Notes under the pieces: generated by a model
What the model was told of the DNA's origin: nothing
The model's input: only the letters and a program-made list of their open reading frames with translations
Database searches by the model: none
Shown: piece by piece, positions 5,501-29,223 of the stretch
Layout of the letters: each line of letters opens with the position of its first letter
How positions within the stretch are numbered: position 1 is the first letter of the stretch
Translations under genes and position numbers: made by a program
Assembly: GCA_013416795.1 (NCBI GenBank)
Contig: RQSC01000026.1
Coordinates: 740,335 to 804,334, forward strand
Reading direction: 5' to 3'
Length of the DNA stretch: 64,000 nt
Origin: Prasinococcaceae sp. CCMP 1430
Lineage: Eukaryota > Plantae > Prasinodermophyta

Positions 5501-7025
5501 CGTCCGTCTTCGCAGCGGCGGCGTCGGCGAGCGCCTCGTCGGCCTTGGCGAGCGCGGCCGCCTCGCTCGCCTGCGCGGCCTCCATCCCGCGCGTGGCCTC
5601 GGCGGCGGCGCGCTCCGCGGCGGACGCATCGCGCTTCAGCGACGCGACGGCCTGGGACAGCTCCGCGACGCTCGCCTTGGCGGCCCCGAGCTCGGAGTGG
5701 AGGGCCGCTGCGCGCGCCTCCGCGTCCGCCAGGCGCGCTTTTCGCGCCGCGAGCTCTGCCTGCAACCCGGCGAGCTCCCCCTGCTTGGCCTCGACCTCGG
5801 CCTGCGTGGCCTTGAGCTTGTGGAAGGCCAGGTCGCGCACTTTGACCGCCCCCTCGAGGCGGGCCTGGGCGTCGCTGACCGCGGCCGCGGCGTCGGCCTC
5901 CGTCTGCTTGAGGCTTGCGAGTAGCTCGGCTACCGCCGCTTCGGCCTCGTGCTTGCCGGCCTCGGCGCTGGCGGCGCGCGCCTTGCTTCGCTCGAGGGCA
6001 GCGGCGTGCGCGCTCTTGGCGGCGCCCAGCTCGCGCTCGGCGGCGCGGGCATCGGCGGCGGCGCGCGCGACGGCTTGCTCGGCGCNGATCGGAAGGCGAG
6101 CCCGTCGGTGCGCTTGTGGGCGTGACCGTCGGGGCTGCGGATGGTGCGCTCGCGGGAGCGCCACTTGGGGCGCTCGTAGGTGTAGCAGTGGGTGGTTCGT
6201 TCGGGACGGGGTCGATGATCTCGTAGTACGGCTCGGGCTCGGGCTCGGGCACCACCACCGGAGAGGCTGTCGGCGCCTTGGTCGGAAGGCCGGCCACGCA
6301 GCGCGGGCTGTCGGCGAAGCCGCTCTTGGTGCCGTACCCGCACGCCTGCGTGAGCACACGCCGGAACGTTGGGTAGACGGGGAGAGCAGGGAAAGGAGCA
6401 GAAGGCGGAGTGCAGGAGAGCGTCAACGCCCGAACGCAGCAGACCTGGCGCAACAAGCATCAGACGCCGCGAGTCTACCCACATCGCGCACGCTCGGCAC
6501 GCACCTCGCAGGCGTCGAGGCAGCACTGCTCGCCTCCCGCGGCTGGAGCCGCCGTGAACGTCGGTATCGCGATGGGCAGCTCCTCGTCGCCCTCTGACGG
6601 GGTGAGCCGTTCCGGGATGATTGGGATGAAGCCAGGGACGCGGGCGGCGCGGCGGCGGCCATGCTGGCCCCTGCGGGCTCCGTCGGGGCGGTCGGGAGGC
6701 GCGGCGGGACGGCGGGGGCCGTTGCGCGAGGCGCGCACCTTGTGGCAAACCCCAAGGCACACCCGCCACACTCCCGATCGCACCGACCGGACGCACACAA
6801 GCACACACACACACACGTGCCCACACACAATCCCCTCCCCCCCCCCACACACACAAACACCACACACGCACACACGCACACACGCGCACACGCGCGCGCG
6901 CGCACACGACACGCGCGCGCGTCCGCGCGATGCGCACATTCGGATTCGCGCGCCTCTCGGCGCCTTTTCCCGGATTCCTCCCCGGGTCCCCCCCCCGTCG
7001 CCGGAACCCCACTCGATGTCTTGCA
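2577..7025 (-). CDS. Very long Ala/Glu-rich coiled-coil protein with a C-terminal transmembrane anchor; probable upstream exons with a Cys/Pro/Thr-rich segment; 5' end uncertain
   Basis: Heptad-like ORF 2577-6085 ends in IVMPCLVAVLSAAATFVMGAAFG plus a short basic tail. Across the single N at 6086 another frame gives a PTxAP-rich stretch. A GT-AG intron at 6346-6504 joins CCLDACE to ACGYGTK. Confidence 0.7.
6086..6086. other. Single N, probably a collapsed assembly gap or frameshift point
   Basis: The coding frame changes exactly at this base. Confidence 0.8.
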
Positions 7026-7170: not shown

Positions 7171-7392
7171 CATCAAAACGCATCCGAGTCGGGGCAACGG
7201 TCACTAACGGCGCCCGACGCCGGGATGCCGTACGGCGGGACGCGTTTTGATGGGCGCGTGAGCGCACGTCAAAACGCACCCGATCGCGCGCCGGGCGCCG
7301 AGGGCGCGCGCGCGCGCGCGGGGGGGGGACGTCACAACGCAAGGCGCGCGGCAACGTCACAACGCAGGGCGCGCGTCAACGTCAAAACGCAC
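7171..7392. promoter_or_regulatory. Cluster of C(A/G)TCAAAACGC motifs in a divergent promoter
   Basis: Copies at 7171-7183, 7242-7252 (inverted), 7267-7279 and 7380-7392, followed by a (T5C)n tract at about 7400-7458. Confidence 0.5.
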
Positions 7393-7937
7393 GGCGATTT
7401 TCCTTTTTTCTTTTTTCGGTGTTTCTTTTTCTTTTTCTTTTTCTTTTTCTTTTTCTTTGCGGGGGGGAATGCGGCGCGCGGACGCGGATGGGATGCGAGG
7501 ACGGGCCATCAAAATGAGAGGTGACCATCAAATCGCAAGGAGGACGCTTTTGGATCGCGCGGGGCGGTGCGCGCGCGCGCGCGCGCGCGGGCGGTGGGCG
7601 GGAGGGGTGTGGGTGTCGGCTGCAGGAGGACATCCACGTGAACCTCCTGCCGGCCGAGCGCGCGATTTATCTGGAGGAAAGAGGGGGGGCGAGACGAGGC
7701 GAGACGAGGCGGGGTAGGGCCTGCCTGCGAGTGCGCGGGGCAGGGCGGGAGCGCGGTTTCCCGGGGGTGGGCCGGCCGCCGCAGCCATCGGTGGACCGTG
7801 CGTGAGGGCCGCGACCGACGCCACCATCGCGCTCGCCCCGCGTGGGAAAGACCCCCGCGCAGTCGAGCAAAGGCGCCGCGGCGAGTAGGTGGGTGGGTGA
7901 ATAAAGGGGTTGGAGGCAGCGGCGGCAGCCCGCGGCG

Positions 7938-13959: not shown

Positions 13960-16900
13960 TCACATCAGGTCATTGACCGTGTCCATCTCCAGCTTGGGCG
14001 CCGGAGCCAGCTTGGGCTCCGACCTTGCGCGGCCCCCAGCCCCACTTCCAGCGAGCTTGAACGTGCGCGTCGGAAGCTCCGAGCCTTGCTCGTCCGCCAG
14101 GGCGTCCGCCTCGAGCACGAGGCGGCGTATCTCGCGGCGCTCGACCTCCTGCGCGCGCTCCGCCTCGCGCCGTGCCGCCACCAAGCTGGTGGCTGTGGGA
14201 ATAGCAAGCAGTCCAGTCTTGCTTTTCCCCTTGATCAGGCACCTGAAATTCATCGTGCTCGGCGCCGTCGCGTCGGACGCATCGCCGCGGGTCTGCGATC
14301 CCGCTGGCGCGGTCGGCCGCGTGGGACCGCCCTCCACGCCCGAAGCCATGCCGGCGATCGAGCTGGTGGAGGCAGTGGCTGCGTCCGCCATGCCCAACAT
14401 GCCTTTGCCGAGGAAGCTGGCCATCTCGGCCTCAAATGCTTCCACATCCTCTGCGCTCGCCTGAGGGCGGCTGCGAAGGCGGGCCCCGCGCTCCTCGCGC
14501 TCCTCAAGCTCCCCATCGGAGCTGCTGCTGCCGTCGCTGCTGCTGTAGCCATCCATCTCGGCGTCCTCCGCGCCGCTGCCGTCCTCTTCCTCGCTCATGT
14601 CTTCGGCATCGCTCTCACCCTCATCGCTCGATCCGTCTTCAGCTTCCTGCGCAAACAAAAGGTCCATATTGTCGTCGTCGTCGGCATCGACCTCCTCGAC
14701 GTCGGCATCCGCACGCGGGGCTTCCTCAGCGTCGAGCGCTTGCGCTGCGGCGGTGGCTTCCTCGAGGTTGACGAAGCGCACGAGCCGCGGGCGCAGGCGC
14801 TCGAAGACATCCTGCACGGCAAACTCAAGCTCAAAGGGCAGCTCATCCACGGGTAGCGGCTGCTCGGCTGGGTCCTCAGTAGCTGCACCTCCGTCCGCGT
14901 CGGCGCCGGAGGCCGTCAGCTCAGCCTGCGATGAGGATCGCGGTGCCCTCTGTTGCTGTCCGTCTTCCGCGGTCACTTCCTCATTCGCCCGTGCCTTGGC
15001 AAGCACATACTGTTGAAAGCGAACGATAAATGCGTCAACCGTCGTCCTGCCCTTGCGTGTCTTGTCGAGAGTCTCGCCGCACGCCCCCAAGAGGCGCAGG
15101 CACAGCCTCGCACGACCCCAATCCGTGGGAGGATCGCTGGTGGCTGCGTGCTTAGCGGCGCGCGCAGCGACTGCCATGGCCTCCTTCGTGGTGTCAACGC
15201 CCGGGTTCGCAGCGGATGCTGCGGCGGCGGCGGCCGCCGCCGCTGCGGCCGACGCGTGTCCCCAGGTGAGCAGCATGTTGAGCGTAGCGAAGATGAGGGG
15301 GGCTGGTACAACTTTGACGTTGTGCAGCTCTGCAAGCAGACCAGCCAGCGCGAGCTTGCGCTGCGCCAGCCGCGCGTCGTTGTCTTCCACCGCCTGGCGC
15401 AGCTCCTCCAGCACGCAGTCGACCACGCCGACGTGCAGCTCGGGCCGGTACAGCCGCAGCGTGGCCAGTGCCACTGCTGCCGCAGGCGCCGAGTGCGACC
15501 GTTGAACGACAGCCTCGAGCACGCACTCTTCCACGAGCTCGCCGCAGCGCGCCCAAGGCAAGCGTCGCACCTGCTTGACAATGCGTGGCACCGCGCGCTT
15601 GCCTCTGCCGAGCCCCCCGATGACGAGATCGCGAACGTATAGCTCAAGTGGCGTGAGTGTCCTCACGCGCGCGACGGCCCGCTCCGGAGGGCGCGTAGCG
15701 AGCATTGCGGATTCGATGAGCGATGTGTGCCGCGACTCCAAGTTCCTCGCCGATGCGAGACGCTTGAGCTTGTCAAGGTTTTGTGCCATGCGCTCGGCCG
15801 ACAGCGGCGTGAGGAGCAGGTAGCGTCCGCACGATTCAAGCAGAGCGCAGAGCACGTCGATGTTTTGCCCGGACAAATCCCGCAGCAGCGCCTCCATGTG
15901 GCGGAGCACGTCAGATGGCGGCACGATGCCAAATTTCGCGAGCTCGCCCATGTAACGCGCATTCGCGAGGCGGTTCTCAATGCCATGCATGCCATCCACC
16001 GATGAGGTCGTGTGCCCCCTCGCCGCACGTCTGCGCGCAAAGTCGTGCTGCACCACATCGACCACGTGCATGGCCACTTCGGTGTAGTGCGGCGCGATGG
16101 TGGCCACGAGCCGCGCATAGTGTGCAGCGAGGTCGGGTCGGGAGCGCGGCACGGCCTCCAGTCGACGCGCCAGGCGCTTGCGACTTGCTTTCGTGCTCAT
16201 GAGGCAGAATTCGACGGCCTTCTTGTCGACGTCCTCCCGCGTGCTCAGATCCGAGTCCAGCGTCTCCTCGAACGCGTCCATGCGCACGCACGCTTTGTCA
16301 AAGGTCGATGCACCATCATTATTTCCGTCGTCACTCGTGGCTGTTGCCTCGCCAGCCACGTCCTCGATTGTATTTCCGTCCTTGTCCTGCTCCCCCCCGC
16401 TCGGGGCCTTGCCCTTGCGCTCTTCGCCGAGCAGAGCGCCCGGCACGTGCGCTCGCAGCTCTAGCAGGTCCTGGTAGTAGGCGCGCTCGTATTCGTCGTC
16501 GAATGGGCCGAGCCTGTCGTCGCTGATGTCCGCCGCGGTGTGCCGCACGACACCCACGGTCCCTTGGACTTGTGCCGCCCCATCGTCTTGCGCGTCCTCC
16601 AGCGCTGGCACCGAGCGGCCCAGCACCTCTGCCAGCTTGCCGAGCGAGGACTGCAGCGCGTCAAACGCCTCACGAACACGCAGGTATTTCTCTCGTTTCT
16701 CTTTGGACTGGTCGGCGCTGCCCGCTTTGATGGCGCTGCGCTCGGCGCTGACCTCCATTTGGCGCAAGGACCGGTAGGCATTCAGCAGCACCTCCTCCCT
16801 CCCATCCATGAACGTGCCGAGGGCGCTCAGCAACACCTGTCGCTGGTCCTCACGCACGATCACGAGCTTGCCGAAGAGCCCGTCGCCATCGGCGGCGCCG

Positions 16901-17977
16901 TCGTCTACGGCTCCAGTCGGGGCAGCTGAAACACCGTGTGTGCCGTCCCCGCGCTCGCCACTCTCGCTCTCCACGCTCCCGGCCCCGCACGCAGACTGCG
17001 CGGTGCTGTGCGCCTGCGGAGCCCCCGGCGGCGGCGGGGGCCGTTGCGGGATATCGAGGCCCAGGAAGGGCCACTGGCCCTGCTTGGCGAATGCCAGCAC
17101 TAGAGCGAGTGCTTCGGCGGCCTCCTCTCCGTCCCAGGGCTCGCGCGGCTTGAGGAGGCCGCGAACAAGCCCAACGAGCCCCGACAGCGACGGCTCGACG
17201 CCCGAAGCGACTAGCTCACATAGCAGCCGCAGCGCCGACCTGCGGCGCGCCATCGTCGCATCAGCGGCATCATCCGATTGACCGGCCGCGATCTTTTGCA
17301 GTCTAGAGGCCACCGCAGCGCCAAACCCCTCGTAGCGGCGGTGCAGGAGCCAGCACGCCCTCGCTGCCGACATAATGTCCGTGGATTTCAGCTTGGCATC
17401 GCACACCGCCACGGCGGCCTCGGGCACGTATTTCGACAAGTTGACCTTGGCGAGGTCCACGAGGGTCGCCGCCTCGGTGTCCTCGCTGATCTTGCTGAGC
17501 TTCTTTAGCGCGCCCGTGCATCGCTTAATGGAAGAGTCCAGGGTCTTGAGGAAGGCCTCCGAGGGCCGCTCGGGGGAGAGGTTCGCCGCGCGTGCCTCGC
17601 TGCGCACAGCAGCCGCCGTGACCGCGGCGGCGTAGCGCTCCTCCGCGGCGGCGCGCTCGGCCGCGGCGCGTTTCGCAGCCTCCTCAGCCTCGCGTCGCGC
17701 GGCCTCGAGCGCTTCAGCCTCGGCTTTGGCGCGCGCAGCGGCCTCTTTCTGCGCTCTTCGCTTGGCCTCCTCCGCCTGCGCGCGAGCTCGATCGGCCGCC
17801 GCGACGGCCTCATCAAACGCTGCCCCCTTCTTCCCGCCGCCGCCGCGCCCGCCGCTGCGCCCTCGCCCGGCCGCTGGAACCCCAGCAGCCCCCGGGCCCC
17901 TACCACCTCCCCTGCCTCCCTTCACGCCTCGGCCCTTTCCCCGCCCCCCTCCGCCCTGGCCGCCGTCGCGGCCCCCA

Positions 17978-18012
<35 letters not shown>

Positions 18013-18186
18013 CGGCTGCCGTTGCTTCTGCCGCAGCGGGCCACCGCCGTCCGCCCTCCTCGCCTTATCGCCGTCACCCGCGCTCCCGCCGTCTTTCCTC
18101 CCGCCTCCGCGGCCGCCCGCGCGCCCCGCGGCGCGCCCGCCGCCTCCGCTGCTGCCCTCGCCGCCGCCGGGCACGCCGCCCATCAC
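13960..18186 (-). CDS. UPF2: Regulator of nonsense transcripts 2 (UPF2)
   Basis: RAANL...LDSSIKRCTGALKKL, LSKYVPEAAVAVC, three MIF4G-like helical domains (NARYMGELAKFG, LAGLLAELHN), an acidic stretch, and a C-terminal UPF1-binding region (FRCLIKGKSK...ERREIRRLVLE). Single exon, 1408 aa. Confidence 0.95.
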
Positions 18187-18457: not shown

Positions 18458-18568
18458 GCGTGCTTTTTGACCTCATTATCCGAATGCGCGTGCTTTTTGA
18501 CGAGCGCGAAGGAAGGGGCTGAGGTGCACGTGCTTTTTGGTACGGGCCTGGGGCGCGTGCTTTTTGAC
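18458..18568. promoter_or_regulatory. Four copies of (G/A)CGTGCTTTTTG in the UPF2 / coiled-coil divergent promoter
   Basis: Copies start at 18458, 18488, 18528 and 18555. Confidence 0.55.
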
Positions 18569-19056
18569 GTGGCAGCGCGCGACGGTCCAAATGCGGCCGA
18601 AATTCGGCGGCAGTTCCCCGGGGCGCCGGGCCGGCGCGCACAAGGCGGCGCGGCGTCCGGCGGTCACCGCCTGGCCGCTCATCCTCATCTCTTCGGCGGC
18701 GGCGGACGCGGCGGCGGCCGCTTCGGCGGCGGCGGCGGCAGGTACTGACTCATTAGGAGCGAGCAAGAAACGCACTCTTTGTACACGACCACGACGCCCG
18801 CCGCGCCCACCGCCGCGCGCGAGCGATCCGCGCCTCCGCCTCGAGCGCCAGCACCGCCCCGACGACGCGCCTCCCACCCCCGCCCGGCCCCCCACACACG
18901 AGGGCAGCCGCGCCACGCACGCAGCTGGCTCCACCGAGGGGGTGGCCACACACAGGTGCCGACGCGCACCTGGCAGAGCATCCCACCCTCCCTTTCCCTT
19001 GAGCTGTTCCGTGGATGGGCCACGGACATTCCGGCTTTAGGCTGGGACTTAGTCTG

Positions 19057-19092
19057 TATAAACCCGGGTATTTCTATATAAACCCGGGTATT
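19057..19092. repeat. Direct repeat TATAAACCCGGGTATT x2 (20-bp period)
   Basis: Copies at 19057-19072 and 19077-19092. Each has a TATA-like 5' end and the palindrome ACCCGGGT. Confidence 0.85.
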
Positions 19093-19313
19093 CCAAACCC
19101 TTACTCAGCGCGCGCGGAGGGTGCGCAGCGGCGGCGGCCGGCGGCCGGCGGCCGCCGGCTGCCGCAGGCCCGCCAGGCAAGGCGCCGCTGCGGTGTCGTC
19201 GTCGTCCGCCCCCGTCCGTGGCACCACCGCGCTGTGGCTCCTGCGGCGTCCGGTCCTGGGCGAAGAAACGGAGTGCCGAGTCAGACTGCTCCAGGGGAGC
19301 TCTTTCGCCAGTG

Positions 19314-22300
19314 ATGTCAGACCGATCACCGACCCCGGGGTCGATGCGCACGCCGATGTCGTCGTCGACGGTCGAGGGCGCATCGGCAACTCTTGCCGAT
19401 GACGCCCAGACGGCCTACTCGACGTACTCCTCCTACATGCGCAGCAGACCTCTGCCGTCATCGGGCTTGCGCGGCTCTGGGACTGTGGGGAGCCACCGGA
19501 CGCGCGACTTTGGATCGGACGCGATGACCAAGCCTGCAGACTGGCGTGCCCCGCGCGACTCCAAGGCGCTGGCGCGAGCACTCGCGACGCCGCTTGGCAC
19601 GGGCAGCTCGCGCCATCCCGGTCTGCTGCGCTCGGCCGAGACGCCTGCGTCGGGCGCAGCGTCTGGCATTGACACGCTTTACTCGTCACATGTGGCAAGG
19701 GAGAGCGCGGCGTCGCTCAGCGCGGCCTTCGAGGGCAAGGCCGCACTTGAGGCCGCGCTCGCGGCCAAAGGGGCGGCGGAGCAGGCGCTGCGAGACGAGA
19801 ATGCCTTGCTTCGCGAGGCGCACCGCAAGGCTTGCGAGGATGCGCGTGTGGCGGCCGAGAAGGCGGCCGCGGCCACGCGCGAGGCGGAGACCACGGCCGC
19901 AGAAATTGCGAGGGCGAAGGCGGCAGTTTCCACCGCCGAGGCTGAGGCGCGAGAGCGTGCGGCACCACTCCAGATGCAGCTCCGCGAGGCCACTGAGATC
20001 AGCCGCGTGAACAAAGCGGCGTGCGAGGAGGCGCGGTCACGATGCGCTGAGGCCGAGACCGTCGTAGAGGACATCCGCCGGGCAATGACGGCTACTGAGG
20101 CCAGGTGTGTGTCGGAAGTCAAGGACGCCCGCCACGATGCCGACCTCGCGCGCGGCGAGAGCGACCGCTTGCGAGAGGAGGCGGAGCGCCTGCGGCGCGA
20201 GGTCGCCCTCTTGGACGAGAATGTTCACGACGCCATGACCAACGCGGCAGCGGCCGAATCTCGCGCCAAGGTTGCGGAGGAGGCCGCCATGCTAGTTCGT
20301 ACCGCGCGTTCGGATGAGGCGACCAGGCGCGCGGCCGCCGAAGACCGTGCGGCCGCGGCCGAGCAAACGGCGAAGTCGTTGGCCGCCGAGCGCGACGCCG
20401 TGGCAGAGGCGCTCCGCGCTGCGCAACGCGTCGCCGAGGAGAAAACTGGCGCGCTCGAACGGCTCAAGCGCGCGCTCGAGGAACAAACAGCCTCCACGAG
20501 GGAGGCTATCGCGGCGGAACGGGCCACAGCAGAGCGCTGCGCGCATGCAGAACGTCAGGCTGCCGCCGCCGTCGAGAATGGTGAGAGTCTTCGCCGCGTG
20601 CTGCAGGATCGTGGCGACTCTATGGAAGTTCTGGAGGCGGACCTGGCAGCGACCAAGGCAGATGCCGCGCGCCTTCGCCTTGCCGTCGAGGAGGCAACAT
20701 CGCGAACTGAAGAGGTCCGCGAGCGGATGGCAAATGCGGACGAGGAGCGTGGGCGCGCGCTGGCGGCCGCGCGGCAGGCGCAGGCTGAGACGACTCGATA
20801 TGAGAGCGAGCTCGAAGCGCTCAAAGATGAGCTGAAGGACTCGTACGCGGCGGCCAAGCGCGATCAGGAGCGCGCAGAACGTCATCGCACCGAGGCAGAG
20901 CAATTGATCGCCTCGCGAGATGGGGCACGCGAAGACCTCGCGGCTGCGAGCGAGGAGGCCAAGGCCAGGACTGCACGCATCCGGGAGCTCGAGCTCTCCA
21001 CGCAGTCGCTCCAGCGTGACCTGGACAGCTTGAAGGCCGCGGCAGAAGCTCAAGAAGGGCATGCGAATGCTCGCATTGCAGAAGCGAGCAGTGCTGTCGA
21101 AGCCACGCGCGCAGAGGCCGCCAGTGCAGAAGAACGGACCGCGCGTGCCACTTCAGAGTGCACGGCCGCGCACAAGCGCATCGCGGCACTCGAGTCTCGC
21201 GTGTCGAGCTTGCAGTCTGAGGGCAGGAAGAGCCAGAGCGCGGCTCGCGCTGCCAAGCGGCGCGTTGATGATGATCTGGCCGAGGCGCTGGCAGAATGCG
21301 AGGAGCTCAGGCAGCGCGCGGAGATTGCCTCAGCGCGCGCCCTGGACGCCGAGGGTGCGCGCGACAAGGCCATCGAGGCCGCTGAAACAGCGGCTGTCGC
21401 GCAGCAGCATGCCGAAAAGCTCGCTGCGCAGCGTGAGGAGGCGATGTCCAACATGCAGAGCACAGCCAGGCGTGCACGCGAGGAGGCCGAGCGCAGCAGG
21501 CGCGAGGCTACCGAGGCGCGCGAGGCCGAGGCAAGGGCTGAACGCGCGCGGGGCGAAGTGGACGCCGCGCGCGAGGAGGCGGAGCGGCTGGCCGAGGAGG
21601 CTCGCCAGGAGTGCCTCAAGGCCGAGTTCGACAAGGCGCAGCTAGAAGCCAAGGTCAAGCGCGTCGAGGCAAACGCTCAGGATCACACGACTGCCTTGGG
21701 CGCAGCGGAGGCAGATGCCGCGCAGGCGTGGGCGCTGGCCGAAAAACGTGAGCGCGAAGTAGCGAGTTTGCGTGCCGACCTCGACAGCGCTAAGCACGAG
21801 GTGTCCACCTCGCGTGCGGCAGCTGCCGCCGCGGCTGACGACGTCGCCAGACATCGCGCAGATGCCGAGTCGACGCGTGCAGTTAGCGCGAGGGAGAGTG
21901 AGCAGCGTGTCCTCGCCGAGCGGCGGGCCGAGGAGGCTGACAGCTCGGCCGCAGCCACAAACGTGCAGCTCAGCAAGCTCGAGTCCGACATCGCGCGCAT
22001 GCGCAACGAGGTTGCTGAGTCTGCTGAGGCTACGCGGCACGCACGTAGGCATGCGGCTGACAGGGATGCCAGGATGATTGCCATGGAGGCCGCCATCGCC
22101 GAGCGTGACGCTGCCACCGCTGAGCTCGGGCGTATTCTCGATGACAAGTCCCAAAGACTCGCGACGTTGGAGAACTCGCTCGAGGCGCAGCGCGCGCTGT
22201 CTGAGAAAGCCACTGCGCGCATTCAAACGTTGGAGGGCGACCTCGCGCATGAGAGGGAGGGTGTGCGTACGAGCGACGCGCGCGCGTCAAAGCTCGCGGA

Positions 22301-24284
22301 GGAGAAAGACGGCGCCGTGGCAGACGCAACTGCCGCACGCAGCACGCTGGCAGCGCGCGACACAGCGATTGCAGCTGCGCGCGCAGAGGCCGACACGCTA
22401 CGCAAGGAGAGGGACTCGTTGCGTGCCGAGTTGCGATTTCGAAAGTCCGCAGCAGAGGAGCTGGCAAACGAGCGCGGCGAGCGTGCTGCCGAGGCGGACG
22501 AGGCGTTGCGCGATGCTCGCGCAGCAACGCAAGCGCTCGCGCGTGCCAAGGCACAGGTCGAGACAGCCAAGGCCGAGGCTGCGCGCGCATCTGGCGAAGC
22601 CGCAGCTGCGCGTGAGAAGGCCGACGCGGCTCTTGCCCGCGCTGCCGAGGAGCACGCGCGTGCCACCGAAGCGCGCGACGCTCTCCGCAGGCTCGGCTCG
22701 GACGCGCGGAGGCTCGGTGCCGCTACCGCAGCGGCCGATGAGGCGGCCAAATCCGCGCGCGCGCGGGCCGAGGCGGCTGAGAAGGAGCTTGCAGCGCTGC
22801 GCAACGCCGCCGGGGAGCGTAGCGCGCACGATCGCTGGAACGGGCCGCTGATGCGGGGCGTGGCCGATGCCGCAGTGGCGGAGAGTGGCACAGCTGGCTC
22901 AGACGACTTGACCGCAGCGCTCACGGCAGCACGCGCGGTCTGCGACGCGCTCGCAGACAGCCTCGGTGACTGTCGAGTATGCTATGCAAGATCTGAGTAC
23001 AACCCGGCGAGGGATGCCATTGAGCTCCGCCTGATGCACGTATCGGAGAATGGCCACGCCTTGGCTGCTGCCAGTGAGGCAGGGCAGGCTTGGGCCTCGG
23101 CCGAGGCACTGCCGCTCGTGGCGACCGAAAGCCCCAACAGCTGTGCGGTGGATGGAGCCATGGGAGCCGGTGTCAGATCCTTCCTGCCTCATAGCTGCGC
23201 GGCATATCGCTGCATCCAGCGCGCTGAGGCCGAGGCTGGCGACGAGTGTCTGTTCCCCTCGTCAGTGTACCTGCGGGACGCGCTCGCGGCCGCTCTTCCC
23301 AAGTGTCTGACGTACGAGCGCGACCCGGAGATGCCCAGTGGCACCTTTATGGCTGTCGCTAGTGGGCAGTCGAGAAGCGGATGCCTACTGGTTGTGACCT
23401 CGCCGACGCGCCCTAACGGCGCGTTGACGGTGCCGGAAGTCGCCGCAACCCACGAAGCCGCAGCGGCAGCAGCAGCGGCGTACGATAAAGTGTCGGAGCG
23501 TTCGCTGGCGGTTGTCGCGCGCGGCGTGGCGCTGGCGACGTCTGCATTTGCCTCCGCCGAGGAGGCCAAGGCGGCGGATCCCAGCGGTCACCGCGCACAC
23601 CGACAGGCCGTGCAGGCGGCGTCGCAGATGCGCGGCGTGGAGGCGCAGCGCGGCGACTTGCAGGCGATTTTGCACTCGACGGATGGTCTGTGCGCGCTTG
23701 CGGAGCTCGGCGCGATGGTGCGCGTGCCGCCGGCGGTGGTACTGGTCGTGTGGGCAACGCTGGCCCTCTGCGATGGCGTCGAGACGCTCCCAGCCCTCGG
23801 GAGCGGCTCTGCCGGCATCGACGACGGGGCTCCGCGCACGCCCATGCGCGGACTGGGCGGGTTGTGGGAGTCGCTGCGCACCCGCTTGGGAGTCGCCACG
23901 GCCTCCCATGCAGCCGTGTCGCTGGCGGAGCGCATGGCGGCGTTCGCGATTGATCCCGCCGATGACCACTCGGCCGCGTACTCGGCGTTTGCAGCCGCGC
24001 GTGGGGAGCTGGGCCCTGCGGACGCTGGCAAGGCCGGGCGCGCGGTGGCGGCGCTCTACGCGTGGACGTGCGGCTCGCTGGCCCAATGGCAGCTCGCAGG
24101 CCTGTCCGAGTTCAGCGCAGCGGCGCTCGAAGGCGCGGGCTCGTCGACCAAGACGGCGCGCTCAGCTTCGTCTGAGCGCGCGAGCGTTGAAGGAGTCTTC
24201 GGGTCCACCGCCGAGCTCAGCGCAGAGGGGGTGCGATCGCTGGAGCAAGAGTTCGGTGAGGCGTCAAAACTCACCGTTGACTGA
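19314..24284 (+). CDS. Giant coiled-coil protein with C-terminal GAF-like and dynein-MTBD-like domains
   Basis: Single ORF with about 1150 aa of heptad-rich helix. It is followed by a globular segment (TFMAV...GCLLVVTS...LTVPEV) and then ALAELGAMVRVPPAVVLVV...LWESLRTRL...KAGRAVAALYAW. The first plausible ATG is at 19314. Confidence 0.8.
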   Translation: MSDRSPTPGSMRTPMSSSTVEGASATLADDAQTAYSTYSSYMRSRPLPSSGLRGSGTVGSHRTRDFGSDAMTKPADWRAPRDSKALARALATPLGTGSSRHPGLLRSAETPASGAASGIDTLYSSHVARESAASLSAAFEGKAALEAALAAKGAAEQALRDENALLREAHRKACEDARVAAEKAAAATREAETTAAEIARAKAAVSTAEAEARERAAPLQMQLREATEISRVNKAACEEARSRCAEAETVVEDIRRAMTATEARCVSEVKDARHDADLARGESDRLREEAERLRREVALLDENVHDAMTNAAAAESRAKVAEEAAMLVRTARSDEATRRAAAEDRAAAAEQTAKSLAAERDAVAEALRAAQRVAEEKTGALERLKRALEEQTASTREAIAAERATAERCAHAERQAAAAVENGESLRRVLQDRGDSMEVLEADLAATKADAARLRLAVEEATSRTEEVRERMANADEERGRALAAARQAQAETTRYESELEALKDELKDSYAAAKRDQERAERHRTEAEQLIASRDGAREDLAAASEEAKARTARIRELELSTQSLQRDLDSLKAAAEAQEGHANARIAEASSAVEATRAEAASAEERTARATSECTAAHKRIAALESRVSSLQSEGRKSQSAARAAKRRVDDDLAEALAECEELRQRAEIASARALDAEGARDKAIEAAETAAVAQQHAEKLAAQREEAMSNMQSTARRAREEAERSRREATEAREAEARAERARGEVDAAREEAERLAEEARQECLKAEFDKAQLEAKVKRVEANAQDHTTALGAAEADAAQAWALAEKREREVASLRADLDSAKHEVSTSRAAAAAAADDVARHRADAESTRAVSARESEQRVLAERRAEEADSSAAATNVQLSKLESDIARMRNEVAESAEATRHARRHAADRDARMIAMEAAIAERDAATAELGRILDDKSQRLATLENSLEAQRALSEKATARIQTLEGDLAHEREGVRTSDARASKLAEEKDGAVADATAARSTLAARDTAIAAARAEADTLRKERDSLRAELRFRKSAAEELANERGERAAEADEALRDARAATQALARAKAQVETAKAEAARASGEAAAAREKADAALARAAEEHARATEARDALRRLGSDARRLGAATAAADEAAKSARARAEAAEKELAALRNAAGERSAHDRWNGPLMRGVADAAVAESGTAGSDDLTAALTAARAVCDALADSLGDCRVCYARSEYNPARDAIELRLMHVSENGHALAAASEAGQAWASAEALPLVATESPNSCAVDGAMGAGVRSFLPHSCAAYRCIQRAEAEAGDECLFPSSVYLRDALAAALPKCLTYERDPEMPSGTFMAVASGQSRSGCLLVVTSPTRPNGALTVPEVAATHEAAAAAAAAYDKVSERSLAVVARGVALATSAFASAEEAKAADPSGHRAHRQAVQAASQMRGVEAQRGDLQAILHSTDGLCALAELGAMVRVPPAVVLVVWATLALCDGVETLPALGSGSAGIDDGAPRTPMRGLGGLWESLRTRLGVATASHAAVSLAERMAAFAIDPADDHSAAYSAFAAARGELGPADAGKAGRAVAALYAWTCGSLAQWQLAGLSEFSAAALEGAGSSTKTARSASSERASVEGVFGSTAELSAEGVRSLEQEFGEASKLTVD

Positions 24285-24584
24285 GTGGGTGCTCGCAGTC
24301 GCAGGGGCCCGCAGGATGAGCTCCCCCTCGCGAGCTAGCTAACCAGCCGCACTCTTCAGTGCGGGGCCAGGCACGCGCGCAGCAATAAAACTAATGATTC
24401 CCCATCCGTGGCACGTCCGAGTATCGATCAAGTGCTGTTAGTGCGTTCTTTATGGTACTTGTAGCGAACGGGCAGCGCGGTTGCTGCAAGCCCGTCCCAC
24501 CGCTTTGCAAGGGTGCCGGTGAGGCACTCTTTTGAAAGCTTGGATCGCGCCCTCGAGCGCGCGGGCGCGCATCAAGCGGGGAGC

Positions 24585-25643
24585 TCAGAATTGACCCGTA
24601 GCATTGTACACCTCGGCCATGTACTTTTTGAACGAGACCTCGTCATCGGCCTCCTGCTGGATGCCCTCCTGGACGGCACACGTGGCCTCGGCGCCGGCGG
24701 CCTCCTCGAATTCCTCCCTCCCGCCATCCACGCTCTCCACCACCGGGATGTCCAGCGTGCCACCGACGTTGCGCGGTACGGGCGCCCGCTCCTTCAGGTC
24801 AGCGATGATGGCCGCGGGGACCAGGACGTAGTCCACGCCGCAACACTCGACGGCCTTGGCCGCCGAGCGCACCGAGGCGGCGACGACCTTGGTCTTTTGG
24901 CCTGCCACCTCCGCCAGCGCGTACGCCTGCGCCACGAGCTCCGGACCTGCGCCGTCTCCGCCGATCGTGTCGGCGGTGCCGACCTGCACGGTGACACTCG
25001 AGCAGCCCGCATCGATGGCAGCCGCTGCGTGCACGCCGGTCGCTGCGGAAACGTCACACTGCGCGGTGCCCGCGGCCTCGAGCCGCCGTGCCGCCTCGAT
25101 TGCGTCGTAGGTGGCGGGCATGCGGAAGAGCACCTTGCTCTTCGCGTCGGCCACCCCCCCTTGGTCGATGAGGCGCAGCATATGCTCGCAGTAGCGCACG
25201 AGCGCATCCGCGTCGTGGGCGTGGCACGTGCGCGTGGCGAGCACCACACGGCCGGCCACCTTGGGGGCGAGCTCTATCGCCTGGTTGGCCATCGCGTTGT
25301 CAAGCACGCAGTCCCACAAGCCGTAGCCCGGCTCAGCGAGGCACGTGTCCCACTGACCCTTGTTCAGCTGTGAGTACACGGTTTCTGCGGCGGACTTGCC
25401 GTTCCCTTGATCCGTCAGCTGCTTAAGTAGGTTCGATGAGCAGACGAACCCGGCGTCAAGCGAGCCCTGCGACGAGGCGTCCACAGCCTCGCCGTACGCG
25501 TTGATGGACTCGAGCGCCGTGTCGCCGACGGGCTGCGTCGCGAGCGATGCGAGCGCCGCCGAGTTGCTCCGGCGCCGCACCGCGCCGCGCTGGGCGCCGC
25601 GCGCGCCACCACGGCGCGTGTGTGCCGTCCTTGTGGGCGATGC
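24585..25643 (-). CDS. Transaldolase-fold protein, probably catalytically dead, with a transit-peptide-like N-terminus (first exon unresolved)
   Basis: GRVV, VLFRMPATYDAIEAARRLEAAG, AAAIDAGCS, TKVVAASVR, CGVDYVLVP and EGIQQ follow the transaldolase motif order. An acceptor CAG lies at 25644-25646. Confidence 0.8.
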   Translation of the reverse strand, partial: ASPTRTAHTRRGGARGAQRGAVRRRSNSAALASLATQPVGDTALESINAYGEAVDASSQGSLDAGFVCSSNLLKQLTDQGNGKSAAETVYSQLNKGQWDTCLAEPGYGLWDCVLDNAMANQAIELAPKVAGRVVLATRTCHAHDADALVRYCEHMLRLIDQGGVADAKSKVLFRMPATYDAIEAARRLEAAGTAQCDVSAATGVHAAAAIDAGCSSVTVQVGTADTIGGDGAGPELVAQAYALAEVAGQKTKVVAASVRSAAKAVECCGVDYVLVPAAIIADLKERAPVPRNVGGTLDIPVVESVDGGREEFEEAAGAEATCAVQEGIQQEADDEVSFKKYMAEVYNATGQF

Positions 25644-26466
25644 CTGCCGCGCCGCGCACCCCACTCCGATCCCATCCCCCCTCTGCCCGCACTCGTGCAC
25701 CCACACCCACGGTGACTGGGTGCCAGCGACGGCGCCCGAATCCACGTCAGCACCCCTCGCGCCAAAAAAAAAAAAAATCCCTGGCACCCGACCCACCCAA
25801 TGGAATCGAGCATCTCGCACGGCGACTTTTGGACCCTGATTTATTTTTGTCCCTTTCGAAAATGTCGAAAAAGGATCCAAATAAAAAACGCGTGCAAAAC
25901 CCAAAATCGAGCGAACGCAGGTTCGGGTTGAGAACCGTCGAGACGACGAACGACGAGGCGGGCCGGCACCGTGTCGCTCCCAAATCGGATCAAATACTTG
26001 GTCGATCGCTTCGCTCATCCGCCCATCGCCGCCCGGACGTCTCCCCGAACACGGATTTAAATCCGGTGTCCAGCCCCTCCATTTTCATTTTCCTTTTCCA
26101 TTTCCGTCATCCCCACCAAAAAAAGCCGTTGGCGACGCGCGCGTGCGTTTTGATGGGAGCTCGTGCGCTCGTCGCGACGCTCCGCCGTCGCGCATTTCGC
26201 GCGCGCGCGCGCGGGGTGCGGGCGGACCTGCGGAAACGCGGAGCGGAGTGGACGAAATGCGGAGCGGCGGAAAGTCGCGCGCGCGAACGGCCGCGCGGCA
26301 GCGCGTGGCCGGTGGGTGGCGTGGGGGGTGGCGCAGGGGACTGGCTTAGGAACTGGAATGCTGGACGGCGATGATGGCATGACGGCGGTGTCTCAGCGGG
26401 CGCCAAGCCGGACGCTCAGGGGGGCGCTGAGCAGCCGCCCCCGCGGCGGCCACCGAGGTGTCGCCG

Positions 26467-29223
26467 ATGTGCTCCGAGGAGGAGATAGTGCCGCGCAACC
26501 TGGAGATGAGCTTCTCGGTGGCAGACGAGGAGGGAGAGCCGCGAGCCGCCGCGGGCGCGGCGGCGACGGGGGCGACGGTCGACGACTCGGCGCTGGGGCT
26601 GGCGCTGCCGTCCGCCGCATCGGTGGTCGTGCGCGTCAAGCCGGCGGCGCCCGAGGCCGCCGAGGAGTGCATCCGCGCCGTGAGCGCGACGCAAGTGGAG
26701 TGCATTGCGCCTGCGGGGAGCGCCAGCTTCAAGGCGGGCGAGCGCTCGGCTGAGTACCGCTTCTCGCGCACGTACGGCCCGGCGACCGGACAGCGCGAAT
26801 TCTACGATGCGGTCGCAGCGCCTATGGTGCGATCGCTGGTCGAGCGCGGCGAGTCGGGCGTGCTGATGGCGTACGGCATCACGGGGAGCGGCAAGACCCA
26901 CACCACGGTCGGCACCAAGCAAGCGCCGGGCCTCGTGCCCAGTGCGCTCATGCAGGTGTTCGAGTCGCTGCCGCGTGGCTGCTGCGTGGCATTGTCGCTC
27001 TACGAAATCTACAACGAGCGCATCGGCGACCTGCTGGCGCCCGGCGCCGACGGCCCCAGCACGACGCGGCCCGGCTCGGCGAGGCTGCGCCTCTGCGAGC
27101 GCGCGGACGGTCGCGTCGTGCCGCGTGGCATTACCGAGCTGCGCTTCGAGCGCGAGGCGGACGCGACGGCCGCGGTGCGGCGCGCCTTGGCCGCTCGCGC
27201 GGCAGGGCGCACCGCTCTCAACAAGGAGTCATCGCGCTCGCACGCGGTGTTTACAATCACCGTCGTGTCGGCGGAAGCGGCGCGCGCCGCCAAAGGCCCC
27301 GAGCAGAGCGCACCCGCAGCACGCCTGCCGCGCCTCGCCTTCGTCGACCTCGCGGGCAGCGAGCGCGCTCACCGCACAGGCGCCTCTGGCGCGCGCCTGC
27401 TGGAGTCGTCCGCCATCAATGCTAGCCTGATGACGCTCGGTCGCTGCTTTGAGGCGCTGCGGCACAACCAGGCGCGTCCGCGCAGCGAGCGCCGCCTCGT
27501 GCCCTACCGCGAGTCCAAGGTGACCCATCTCTTCCGTGACGCTTTCCACGGCCAGGGTGCGCTGGCGCTGCTGGTGTGCGTATCGCCCGATGCGGCGGAC
27601 TACGACGAGACTCAGCACGTGCTGCGCTACGCGGCGGTGGCCGCCAAGATCAAAACCATGGCCGAGATCGGCGTGGCCCCCAAGGCTGGCACGCTCCTGG
27701 ACGAGGTCATCGAAGAGGCCGAGGAGGAGGCCGAGGTCGAGGCATCCGAGGAGGATCCGATGGAAACCGCTCCGACGCCCGCGAACAAGCGCAAGCGCGA
27801 GGTTCTCGAAGAGGATGCCATTCAGGAGGAGGGCGACGACGAGGCCAACTTCGGCGGCGAGCTCGATCCGCAGGTTGACGTGGTCAACCTGAGGTCCGAG
27901 GTGGATGCGCTCAGGCAGCGCTTGTATGAGGCGGAGGCCGCTGCTGCTCGCATCGAGAGCGAGGTACGCGAGGAGGTCAGCGCGGAAATGGCTGAGCTCA
28001 TTAAGGCGATGGAGGAGAACTATGCCGCCAAGGGCGCCAAGGTCAAGGCCGCCGTGCGGAAGGGGCGTTCGACCAACGCTTTCGAGAGGCGCCTCAACGG
28101 GCTCAACGAGGACGAGGAGGATGCCGAGGACGAAGCTGACGATGTTGAAGAGGCGGACGAAAGCGACGATGGCATCGAGATTGTGGATGGATCGGACGAG
28201 GAGGAGGAGGGAGATGTCCGCGCTGCGCAGGGCAGCACTCGCAAGCGGTCGACGCGGCGGGCGCGCCCCTCGTCGCAGGCCGCCGCGGCGCTGCTGGCTG
28301 AGACGGTGCGCGCGCGCGCGGTCGCCGCAGAGCAGGAGGCCGCCAACCTGCGCGAGGAGAAGGCGCTGGCCGAGCGCCGCGCGGCCGAGCACAGGGCGGC
28401 GGCCGAGGCGGCCGAGGCCGAGGCTGCAAAGCTTGCTAAGACCGCAGCCGAGGCGCGTGAAGCAATGCAGAGGGCGCTGGAGGAGGAGCGTACACAGATG
28501 GAGGCCAACGCCGCCATGGAGCGCGAGGTGCTGGAGGAGCAGCTGCGGCGACAGAAGGAGGAGTATGACGCCCTCCTGTGCAAACTGAACACCGCGGCCG
28601 GGCGAGCGAGCAGGGCGGCGGAGGGAAGGCGCAAGTCGATGGCCGTCTTCAGAGCCGTAGTCGAAGGCGCAGAATGCACAGACGACGCGCTGCCCACCAT
28701 CGCCGAGCCCAAGGCCATCGAGGCGGAGGCGGCCATACTGACGGAGGAGCCAGCCGCGATGGAGCCAGCCGCGATGGAGCCAGCAGAGGCTGAGCTCGCC
28801 GCCGAGGAGGCCCCGCAAGGAGGCGACGAGGCCATGGAAGGCCCCTCCACTACCGCGGAGGTTCCTGCGGAGACGAAGCCAGCGGCCGTGAGCCCCGAGA
28901 TCATCGATCTGACAGCGCCCACGCCGGCGCCGGCGCCAGCGCAGCGCCGCGGGGGCATGCGGAAGGGCGCCGCGCGCAAGGGTGGCTCAAAGAAAGCCAA
29001 GAAGGCCGCAGCTGGAAAGGAGAACGCCAGCGTCAACGCCGCCAAGGCCGCGGCGCTCGCGGCGGTCGAATGCGCGGCAGTCGCAGCGGCAGCGGCCACC
29101 CCTGGTGCTGCGCTGCCCGAGGTGGCGCCAGAACCCAAGCGAAGGAGGAAAGCGAGCGCGCCGGCCGACGCGCCTGCGCGCCGGATCACGCGTGCCGCGG
29201 CGCGCAGCGCTGCTGTTGCGTGA
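26467..29223 (+). CDS. Kinesin motor, kinesin-6 (MKLP/KIF20/KIF23)-like
   Basis: P-loop GITGSGKT, switch I NKESSRSH and switch II DLAGSER. LGRCFEALRHNQ and VPYRESKVTHLFRDAFHGQG are kinesin-6-like. A coiled-coil stalk and an acidic/basic tail follow. Confidence 0.9.
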   Translation: MCSEEEIVPRNLEMSFSVADEEGEPRAAAGAAATGATVDDSALGLALPSAASVVVRVKPAAPEAAEECIRAVSATQVECIAPAGSASFKAGERSAEYRFSRTYGPATGQREFYDAVAAPMVRSLVERGESGVLMAYGITGSGKTHTTVGTKQAPGLVPSALMQVFESLPRGCCVALSLYEIYNERIGDLLAPGADGPSTTRPGSARLRLCERADGRVVPRGITELRFEREADATAAVRRALAARAAGRTALNKESSRSHAVFTITVVSAEAARAAKGPEQSAPAARLPRLAFVDLAGSERAHRTGASGARLLESSAINASLMTLGRCFEALRHNQARPRSERRLVPYRESKVTHLFRDAFHGQGALALLVCVSPDAADYDETQHVLRYAAVAAKIKTMAEIGVAPKAGTLLDEVIEEAEEEAEVEASEEDPMETAPTPANKRKREVLEEDAIQEEGDDEANFGGELDPQVDVVNLRSEVDALRQRLYEAEAAAARIESEVREEVSAEMAELIKAMEENYAAKGAKVKAAVRKGRSTNAFERRLNGLNEDEEDAEDEADDVEEADESDDGIEIVDGSDEEEEGDVRAAQGSTRKRSTRRARPSSQAAAALLAETVRARAVAAEQEAANLREEKALAERRAAEHRAAAEAAEAEAAKLAKTAAEAREAMQRALEEERTQMEANAAMEREVLEEQLRRQKEEYDALLCKLNTAAGRASRAAEGRRKSMAVFRAVVEGAECTDDALPTIAEPKAIEAEAAILTEEPAAMEPAAMEPAEAELAAEEAPQGGDEAMEGPSTTAEVPAETKPAAVSPEIIDLTAPTPAPAPAQRRGGMRKGAARKGGSKKAKKAAAGKENASVNAAKAAALAAVECAAVAAAAATPGAALPEVAPEPKRRRKASAPADAPARRITRAAARSAAVA

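Follow-up and report, generated by a model that had tools for sequence, protein, structure and literature searches.

A long orphan coiled-coil protein from a marine green picoalga with short dynein-tip-like motifs in its C-terminal region

Introduction

The microtubule-binding stalk of dynein consists of a six-helix bundle on an antiparallel coiled-coil hairpin, which is embedded between AAA4 and AAA5 of the motor ring. The locus described here raises the question of whether such a tip may also occur at the end of a protein that is not a motor. A reading of the sequence alone had suggested that one protein encoded in the window (the entire 64-kb stretch of DNA that was analyzed) is composed of a long coiled coil, a GAF-like segment, and a module with the motif order of the dynein tip. 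If true, the dynein tip would be able to exist and evolve as a free-standing, portable module, and the protein would provide a minimal natural system for how flanking helices set tip affinity.

The gene and its expression

The host is a marine, high-GC, intron-poor green picoalga. All of the peptides quoted in the sequence-only reading were found where it had placed them, in one open frame of 1,688 codons on the forward strand (19218-24284). The first ATG in frame, at position 19314, is the probable start codon and leads to a protein of 1,656 amino acids. ORF residue numbers, used throughout, count from the frame opening at 19218, such that ORF residue 33 is the first of the protein.

19314..24284, + strand: probable coding sequence, single exon, from the first ATG to the stop (ORF translation, codon-position GC, RNA-library contigs, and substitution counts)

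The codon-position GC is coding-like along the entire ORF, 19218-24284. Marine metatranscriptome contigs from four runs in two studies lie along its whole length, the tail and the stop codon included. Within the tail, these contigs cover positions 23333-23483, 23531-23961, and 24004-24400, the last of which spans the stop, and they contain no splice joint. One contig joint elsewhere, from 19757 to 22551, was rejected as an intron given its non-canonical ends, its side of only 23 letters, and its location within the repetitive coiled-coil region, and was read as an assembly chimera. The RNA contigs differ from the ORF by 26 synonymous differences and seven changed codons; the amino acid variants in the tail number four (R1459H, Q1463R, G1528A, and G1547S). 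On the basis of the codon-position GC, the transcripts that reach through the tail and stop, and the 26 to seven ratio of synonymous differences to changed codons, the gene is real, transcribed, and under purifying selection.

Organization of the protein

The overall architecture is distinctly tripartite, with a Ser/Pro-rich head, a proline-free heptad coiled coil of ~1,000 residues, and a non-coiled tail of ~480 residues. The individual regions are as follows.

19314..19724, + strand: Ser/Pro/Gly-rich N-terminal region, ORF residues 33-169 (composition per 100 residues)
19725..22826, + strand: coiled-coil rod of ~1,000 residues, ORF residues 170-1203 (no proline; rich in Ala, Glu, Arg, and Leu; heptad periodicity)
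22827..23492, + strand: non-coiled alpha/beta region, ORF residues 1204-1425, GAF/PAS-like in predicted-element order only (low-confidence AlphaFold secondary structure)
23493..23693, + strand: helical linker, ORF residues 1426-1492, placed like the stalk strand entering the tip module (predicted helices; variants R1459H and Q1463R lie here)
23694..23774, + strand: hydrophobic helix with the motif E-L-x-x-M-x-x-x-P-P-x-V-V, ORF residues 1493-1519, aligned to helix H1 of the dynein tip (local HMM and hhalign matches)
23775..23855, + strand: Gly/Pro/Ser-rich loop, ORF residues 1520-1546, at the site of variable-length insertions in the dynein tip alignment
23856..24077, + strand: four further predicted helices, ORF residues 1547-1620, with the motifs W-x-x-L-R, A-F-x-x-D, and K-A-G-x-A-x-x-x-L-x-x-W (AlphaFold secondary structure; local HMM match to the H6 motif)
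24078..24281, + strand: C-terminal tail, ORF residues 1621-1688, in which the helix runs on and is followed by an acidic stretch rich in Ser and a short final helix (translation; predicted helices)

Judging from its composition, the N-terminal region, ORF residues 33-169, is probably disordered. Proline is absent from about residue 200 to residue 1200, and a hydrophobic periodicity of 3.5 residues is observed in five of the seven 140-residue blocks of the rod (z of 4.7-13.3). The coiled coil noticed earlier is thus real, and its length is nearer to 1,000 residues than to the 1,150 first given.

Among the peptides in the tail, PSGTFMAVA begins at residue 1373 (nucleotide 23334), ALAELGAMVRVPPAVV at residue 1493 (nucleotide 23694), LWESLRTRL at residue 1549 (nucleotide 23862), and LAERMAAF at residue 1569 (nucleotide 23922), and LGPADAGKAGRAVAALYAW extends from residues 1598 to 1616 (nucleotides 24009-24065). 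The tip-like module carries two of the four variants, G1528A and G1547S, and both are located in or border the Gly/Pro/Ser-rich loop. The C-terminal tail (24078..24281) contains five basic and 10 acidic residues.

Single-sequence AlphaFold models were of low confidence, with pLDDT values of 39.5 for the whole ~480-residue tail and 41.2 for a 173-residue segment surrounding the tip-like module (residues 1471-1643). Foldseek searches with both of these models returned unrelated folds at E values above 1. The segment was not folded with dynein sequences as the alignment, as this would have been circular. In the low-confidence model, the number and order of the predicted helices are compatible with a dynein tip, and the helices flanking the module are only about 28 and 40 residues in length. 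Residues 1204-1425 are predicted to be arranged as a helix, two strands, a helix, strands, and helices, with pLDDT values of 30-57 that are too low for a fold comparison.

Search for relatives

The tail was searched exhaustively with phmmer against 1.84 billion protein representatives, which yielded one cluster only, namely same-species fragments that are 98-100% identical. Neither word searches nor a scan of metagenome loci revealed other relatives of the protein. With the whole protein, the tail, or sub-segments thereof as queries, Pfam gave only sub-threshold noise at E values up to 10 (DUF536, DUF7896, and DUF742). A sequence search of the PDB with the whole tail produced no match at E values up to 10. 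The best PDB matches of the 173-residue segment were two antibody CH1/Fab chains (E of 0.37-1.4), which were judged to be chance. The protein is an orphan without detectable relatives. Since only same-species fragments were found, there was no alignment for folding or for profile-profile work.

Comparison with the dynein stalk tip

As compared with the dynein stalk tip (PF12777; PDB entries 2RR7, 6L4P, and 6RZA), the end of the protein likewise displays a small helical module between flanking helices, the first element of which is a hydrophobic helix of the E-L...P-P...V...V type. This is followed by a variable loop, a W-containing helix, an A-F-x-x-D helix, and a K-A-x-x-A-x-x-x-L-x-x-W helix that continues further. 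The order of the helices, as predicted, agrees with that of dynein. Unlike the dynein tip, however, the tail shows no significant profile match, it has neither an AAA ring nor a long antiparallel stalk, its fold is predicted at low confidence, and it lacks the proline after H6 that is the sole invariant column of the dynein set.

The reference set for the profile tests comprised 32 real axonemal dynein stalk tips that were fetched for this purpose, and from which a custom, core-only HMM was constructed. With the stalk flanks included, an earlier HMM had mainly picked up Ala-rich coiled coil in other parts of the window, and it was replaced. In the Pfam control, 30 of the 32 dynein segments matched PF12777 at an E value of 0.001 or better (best 7e-56), whereas the whole protein, the tail, and the 173-residue segment did not match this family at E values up to 10. 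No AAA or other dynein domain was detected by Pfam anywhere in the 1,688-residue frame. Against the dynein-tip profile, hhalign assigned the segment a probability of 0.3-0.4% (E of 0.13-0.15).

With all filters off, the segment scored 2.5 bits on the custom HMM by way of two colinear local matches, one of the H1 type and one of the H6 type, which are positioned at the appropriate ends of the module. True tips, scored on the same HMM with relatives of at least 40% identity left out, reached 61-103 bits in 30 of 32 cases, with one at 31 bits and one at 7. The last of these is a true dynein (L003) whose tip is divergent enough to score only 7 bits, and because of it a low HMM score cannot exclude a dynein-tip fold.

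The dynein-like motif order reported in the sequence-only reading is present as two colinear matches, and whether it beats chance depends on the null that is chosen. Four of 2,000 composition-matched shuffles attained 2.5 bits, and among all long ORF windows of the 64-kb window only one locus outscores the segment on the tip HMM. Of 928 windows taken from real dynein sequence outside the tip, however, 63 attained the same score. In the best pairwise alignment, 60 residues that span the A-F-x-x-D and H6 motifs pair without gaps with an axonemal dynein tip (L047); the z of 4.9 applies to that pair, and after correction for 32 targets the score was matched by 18 of 300 shuffles.

The H1-like helix has the highest 19-residue Kyte-Doolittle peak of the protein (1.95), and true dynein H1 helices reach up to 2.19. 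The net charge of the tip-like module is -3, and that of true axonemal tips ranges from -5 to +6. Both values lie within the true-tip range and do not discriminate, and the use of charge and hydrophobicity as an argument against a dynein tip was dropped.

Among the language-model neighbors listed for residues 1471-1643, 26 of 30 are clusters that carry PF12777, with scores of 0.92-0.94; their shared-feature counts of 151-153 fall in the class that the calibration of the tool equates with chance or a distant relative. By sequence, the tail falls outside the dynein microtubule-binding family PF12777: there is no Pfam match, the HMM score is 2.5 bits, and the hhalign probability is 0.3-0.4%. Nor is it placed in a GAF family. 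The likeness to the dynein tip amounts to a colinear set of three or four short motifs, which is too weak for placement in a family, and for this reason microtubule binding is regarded as a possibility rather than as a result.

The GAF-like label and EFCAB5

The order of the predicted elements in the alpha/beta region resembles that of GAF domains (PF01590, PF13185, and PF13492), and it is followed by a G-x-L-L-V-V strand and a long Ala-rich helix. Unlike GAF domains, the region contains no nameable ligand-pocket residues, and none of these three families was matched by residues 1204-1431 at E values up to 10 or by the whole tail at E values up to 0.1. The GAF-like label thus found no profile support, and its basis consists of language-model neighbors and the low-confidence order of predicted elements. 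These neighbors of the whole tail include clusters annotated as GAF domain-containing (scores of 0.86-0.93). The best of them, with a score of 0.93, are clusters of 577-593-residue "GAF domain-containing" proteins from Chlorophyta, Oomycota, and Ciliophora, ~75% of whose members also carry Dpy-30. Only five of the ten best family-bearing matches agree, however, a level at which, by the tool's own rating, the family is probably wrong.

The C-terminus had also been likened to that of EFCAB5. Both are long proteins, and EFCAB5 belongs to ciliated cells. EFCAB5 is a stalk protein of radial spoke 3 in mammalian sperm (PMC11779644); its defining features are an EF-hand and a DPY30 motif, the latter of which pairs with AK7 on CFAP91 (PMC11779644, PMC12423330). 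Pfam detected neither an EF-hand nor Dpy-30 (PF05186) in the protein or its tail, and the tail has no meaningful sequence match to solved chains; the proposed likeness is unsupported. A radial-spoke docking protein of the RSP2 or EFCAB5 kind, with a GAF-like and a DPY30 element and an axonemal location, is highly improbable: the neighboring GAF/Dpy-30 clusters and the DPY30 motif of the spoke protein EFCAB5 speak for it, but the tool's own rating, the lack of any Dpy-30, EF-hand, or GAF match in Pfam, the lack of a meaningful PDB match even though axoneme entries were in the searched library, and the reported absence of EFCAB5 conservation in Chlamydomonas and Tetrahymena (PMC12423330) speak against it.

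Proposed function and alternatives

Tethers and scaffolds in which a long coiled coil carries a small globular end include the golgins, rootletin-type fibers, and plant filament-like proteins. Like these, the protein described here combines a head that is probably disordered with a ~1,000-residue rod and a C-terminal region in the place of a targeting region; it differs in that it shares no sequence relation with them and none of the named targeting domains is matched in its C-terminal region. The best explanation, to which we assign a probability of roughly 55%, is that it is an orphan, rod-shaped tether or scaffold protein encoded by a real, selectively constrained, single-exon gene. Most likely it would form a long parallel dimer and act as a structural tether or scaffold with a length on the order of 100 nm or greater. 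In the end of ~480 residues, an alpha/beta domain probably precedes a bundle of five or six helices, and, from the architecture, this globular end may dock the rod onto a partner.

The alternative that fares best is that the end of the protein adopts a dynein-type microtubule-binding fold on a short helical hairpin, by way of very old homology or convergence, and that the protein anchors to microtubules, without a motor, through the tip of its long rod. This we consider possible though unlikely. The language-model neighbors, the colinear H1- and H6-type matches with their four in 2,000 shuffles, and the 60-residue alignment with an axonemal tip argue for it, and the Gly/Pro loop at the insertion site, the helix count and order, and the hydrophobicity and charge of the module are in keeping with it; the presence of a kinesin gene nearby lends weak context. 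These are to be set against the failure to match Pfam MT, the gap between 2.5 bits and the 61-103 bits of typical tips, the frequency with which non-tip dynein windows and shuffles equal the scores, and the neighbor counts in the "chance or distant relative" class. Moreover, the flanking helices measure at most ~40 residues, there is no AAA ring, and a literature search found no non-dynein carrier of the tip fold. That the tail is the first dynein-type tip outside of a dynein motor, on a short helical hairpin that neighbors a GAF-like domain where a ~1,000-residue rod ends, in the deepest-branching green-plant lineage, is a doubtful proposition.

Quite improbable is the reading of residues 1503-1518, which are all hydrophobic, as a membrane-spanning helix, by which the protein would act as a tether anchored in a membrane, with its rod and alpha/beta domain in the cytoplasm and its last 170 residues lumenal or extracellular. 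The hydrophobic maximum of the protein lies here, with an Arg on its N-terminal side and an Asp on its C-terminal side, and another long Ala-rich coiled-coil gene in the window, 2577-6359 on the reverse strand, carries a clear hydrophobic tail anchor at its end. Only 13-16 uncharged residues, however, separate Arg 1502 from Asp 1519, which is short for a bilayer, and the first of these are two prolines. In addition, the H1 helices of soluble dyneins are equally or more hydrophobic, and ordinary amphipathic helices are predicted for the 170 residues that follow.

On the present evidence, the gene encodes another lineage-restricted long coiled-coil protein. Its interest lies mainly in its being a well-supported orphan that is expressed and under selection, lacks any relative among 1.84 billion proteins, and belongs to an early, little-studied branch of the green plants. 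It also provides a calibration case in which language-model neighbors and motif reading agree and every profile method disagrees.

Promoter region and neighboring genes

Two elements were read directly from the sequence upstream of the gene.

18459..18569, no strand assigned: four copies of GTGCTTTTTGAC/G, in the divergent promoter common to a UPF2 gene and the coiled-coil gene
19055..19095, + strand: direct repeat, GTATAAACCCGGGTATT x2, TATA-like, ~220-260 nucleotides upstream of the ATG

The TGCGTTTTGAYG family has 13 matches in the 64-kb window versus 0.43 expected, and two of the four promoter copies match it with one mismatch. The motif gives no functional clue within the window, where the promoters that bear it flank mixed genes, several of them without a Pfam match. 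The repeat of GTATAAACCCGGGTATT is a putative core promoter. A kinesin gene is located 2 kb downstream of the coiled-coil gene.

The gene and its transcripts

The open frame at 19218-24284 is a real, selected gene that encodes a long coiled-coil protein. It resides in a window of ~68-70% G+C, in which the eukaryotic genes are long uninterrupted frames; BEACH and AATF proteins are also encoded there. A G+C content of 69.8% has been published for P. coloniale, an organism described as being without flagella and for which a count of flagellar proteins was reported (PMC7455551).

Genes at and beside the locus
13960-18186, minus strand, UPF2
19218-24284, plus strand, open frame of the gene under study (1,688 codons, single frame)
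26458-29223, plus strand, kinesin gene

The first ATG is at 19314 (residue 33 in the numbering of the open frame, which is employed throughout), and a start at this position gives a likely product of 1,656 residues. From start to stop, the tail (residues 1204-1688) included, the G+C content by codon position runs high, low, high, and is thus coding-like in this frame. Contigs from the RNA libraries of four marine metatranscriptome runs, belonging to two studies, lie along the frame with identities of 95-99%. Those of the tail include 23333-23483, 23531-23683, 23695-23961, and 24004-24400, the last of which passes through the stop codon. Such contigs indicate presence in RNA libraries and do not provide transcript ends; among those covering the tail there is no splice joint. 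ENA metagenome assemblies also hold fragments of the gene that are 98-100% identical. Over the whole gene, the metatranscriptome contigs differ from the window by 26 synonymous changes versus 7 changed codons, which indicates purifying selection. The tail alone shows seven synonymous changes and four replacements. R1459H and Q1463R are positioned in the helix preceding the candidate module, G1528A and G1547S fall within its Gly/Pro loop or on the border of it, and none of the four is inside the motif helices.

In one metatranscriptome contig, 19757 is joined directly to 22551, and the 2,793 nt between them are left out; the ends are CT..AG, and one side of the joint has 23 letters. The joint falls in the repetitive region that encodes the coiled coil, and an assembly chimera is its most likely origin. 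A further match (L001; ENA ERZ28548065, contig 'chicken_3' NODE_11253, 9,474 bp, coverage 0.89) derives from a metagenome assembly labelled chicken. This DNA, at trace coverage and 98-100% identical to the locus of the marine alga, probably reflects carry-over or contamination rather than habitat.

Architecture of the protein

The peptides quoted in the sequence-only reading all occur in this one frame and in the order given.

Layout of the protein (residues)
1-170, Ser/Pro/Gly-rich region
~170-1203, coiled-coil rod of ~1,000 residues, proline-free, Ala/Glu/Arg/Leu composition
1204-1425, non-coiled region; low-confidence AlphaFold prediction of helix, two strands, helix, strands, helices
1426-1640, helical region; low-confidence AlphaFold prediction
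C-terminal end, acidic Ser-rich tail

The proposed coiled coil is supported by the absence of proline and by heptad periodicity, but it is ~1,000 residues in length rather than ~1,150. The 3.5-residue hydrophobic periodicity of the rod has z values of 4.7-13.3 in five of seven blocks. The predicted elements of residues 1204-1425 are followed in the sequence by a G-x-L-L-V-V stretch and a long Ala-rich helix; their order would fit a GAF or PAS-like domain, without establishing one. The prediction for residues 1426-1640 opens with two helices, which are followed by a hydrophobic helix and a loop; three short helices come next, and the last helix is long. The hydrophobic helix, predicted at residues 1503-1519, is fully hydrophobic and follows a Pro-Pro pair, and the loop after it consists of 27 residues of the Gly/Pro/Ser type. 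In AlphaFold runs without an alignment, the tail reached a pLDDT of 39.5 and the candidate dynein-tip-like segment (residues 1471-1643, 173 residues) one of 41.2, and Foldseek on these two low-pLDDT models returned unrelated folds with E above 1 throughout.

Residues 1204-1688 were compared exhaustively by phmmer with 1.84 billion representative proteins; a single cluster emerged, made up of fragments of the same gene, and word-indexed searches with the full-length protein, the tail, and the segment added nothing further, even at E 10. Given the size of the library, E 0.001 corresponds to ~40 bits, and thus relatives weaker than that would be missed. The metagenome scan contained no related locus. 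No Pfam family rose above noise, either for the complete protein or for any piece of it; the profile comparison with Pfam MT and GAF was thus negative, and the GAF assignment has no profile support. Against all PDB chains the tail had no match, and the segment had only chance matches to antibodies.

Most likely, the gene encodes a long coiled-coil protein that is an orphan restricted to its lineage. The plain reading, to which we assign a probability of roughly 0.55, is that of a tether or scaffold whose docking end is unclassified, the mechanism being taken solely from the architecture. The rod would very probably dimerise and extend over roughly 100 nm or more, and the 480-residue end would be the part giving the protein its address.

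Comparison with dynein stalk tips

Control tips were sought through the AAA4 P-loop of axonemal dyneins, for which a degenerate DNA pattern was used. This pattern yielded 120 metagenome and metatranscriptome loci, all reading L-V-G-V-G-G-S-G-K-Q-S-L in frame, and the 32 whose frames reach the stalk tip, ~350 residues downstream of the P-loop, form the control set. PF12777 (Pfam MT, the dynein stalk) was matched by 30 of these tips (alignment A2) with E values of 0.001 or lower (lowest 7e-56), and the control-tip profile matched, with E values as low as 4e-51, the dynein heavy chains in solved axonemes. The control set is therefore sound. In PDB entry 9fqr, the tip profile matches several chains longer than 4,000 residues (E 1e-31 to 1e-48) that bear names such as CFAP57, malate dehydrogenase 1B or RSPH9, and for this entry the naming of the molecules looks shifted.

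With all HMMER filters off, the segment scored 2.5 bits against a core-only HMM of the 32 tips, in two local alignments that are colinear with the tip and sit at the proper ends. The motif of helix H1 of the stalk tip was aligned to E-L-G-A-M-V-R-V-P-P-A-V-V... and that of helix H6 to G-P-A-D-A-G-K-A-G-R-A-V-A-A-L-Y-A-W. This score was reached by 4 of 2,000 shuffles of the segment and by 63 of 928 windows of real dynein sequence away from the tip. When 173-residue windows from every frame of at least 250 residues in the 64-kb window were ranked, the segment locus was second, the top match being diffuse and located in another Ala-rich coiled coil. The hhalign probability versus dynein tips was 0.3-0.4% (E 0.13-0.15). 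The best pairwise match, to the control dynein L047, is ungapped over 60 residues and aligns A-F-x-x-D and the H6 motif; z is 4.9 for this one pair, but when the best of 32 targets was taken, 18 of 300 shuffles scored equally well.

The dynein family has had recognisable classes since before the last eukaryotic common ancestor. True tips, with relatives of at least 40% identity left out, score 61-103 bits in 30 of 32 cases and 31 bits in one, which places the segment far outside the normal range of the family; together with the missing Pfam MT match and the hhalign values, this removes the suggested family membership. The remaining tip, that of dynein L003, scores 7 bits, and a score this low thus does not by itself exclude a dynein fold. 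L003 (5731-6240, minus strand), a dynein heavy chain from a metagenome, has its AAA4 P-loop intact and its stalk tip shortened to 94 residues; this may be a case of a microtubule-binding tip that has degenerated.

A feature search of language-model neighbors points the other way, in that 26 of the segment's 30 neighboring clusters carry PF12777 (scores 0.92-0.94). The top neighbor is an unnamed 156-residue cluster with 173 shared features, and the PF12777 clusters share 151-153, which is the tool's class of 'chance hit or distant relative', in a calibration not made for protein parts. We take these neighbors as one positive, semi-independent signal; the language model and the motif reader may both respond to one small set of local motifs, and hence they are counted as one lead. 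A dynein-like fold of the tail is a minority possibility, and an end that is truly tip-like and binds microtubules is rather unlikely.

The features that did not DISCRIMINATE were the hydrophobicity of the H1-like helix, the net charge, and the position of the Gly/Pro loop. The segment has a net charge of -3, inside the range of true axonemal tips (-5 to +6), and its loop occupies the same place as the variable insertions of axonemal dyneins. The hydrophobicity of the H1-like helix, 1.95, is enough for a membrane-helix call by the Kyte-Doolittle rule, but H1 helices of true, soluble dyneins reach 2.19. With only 13-16 uncharged residues, beginning with two prolines, it is improbable that this helix spans a membrane.

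A radial-spoke GAF/DPY30 relation is more improbable still. Neighbors of the whole tail were 'GAF domain-containing' clusters with Dpy-30 and bacterial GAF clusters (0.86-0.93); with agreement among only five of the ten best family-bearing neighbors, the family is probably wrong by the tool's rating, its calibration again not applying to protein parts. EFCAB5, of which the C-terminus had seemed reminiscent, is specific to sperm, where it belongs to the stalk of radial spoke 3; it contains an EF-hand, pairs through its DPY30 motif with AK7 on CFAP91, and is reported not to be conserved in Chlamydomonas or Tetrahymena (PMC11779644, PMC12423330). In contrast, neither an EF-hand nor Dpy-30 is detectable in the protein under study, and no solved chain matches; the likeness to EFCAB5 is not supported.

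Probable promoter motifs and neighboring genes

Putative promoter elements
19055-19095, direct repeat of GTATAAACCCGGGTATT (two copies, TATA-like), upstream of the gene under study
7171-7537, 18459-18569, 26144, 53969, 54458, motif family TGCGTTTTGAYG/GTGCTTTTTGAC (one mismatch or fewer)

The divergent promoter common to UPF2 and the gene under study contains four copies of GTGCTTTTTGAC/G. GTGCTTTTTGAC is a variant of the motif family TGCGTTTTGAYG, which has 13 matches in the window versus 0.43 expected at one mismatch or fewer. The copies cluster in intergenic regions that are probably promoters. Genes beside the other copies are of mixed function, and thus the motif gives no functional clue; an association with cilia genes is not evident within the window. 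The duplicated TATA-like element lies ~220-260 nt upstream of the ATG, and is a possible core promoter.

A transaldolase-family gene (24585-26018, minus strand) is convergent with the gene under study, and the kinesin motor gene begins 2 kb downstream. These two neighbors have a common divergent promoter with one exact motif copy within. A second long Ala-rich coiled-coil frame, at 2577-6359 on the minus strand, encodes 1,260 residues with visibly repeated segments and had no Pfam match. One ambiguous base produces an X near residue 92, and the frame ends in a hydrophobic C-terminal tail anchor (...IVMPCLVAVLSAAATFVMGAAFG...).
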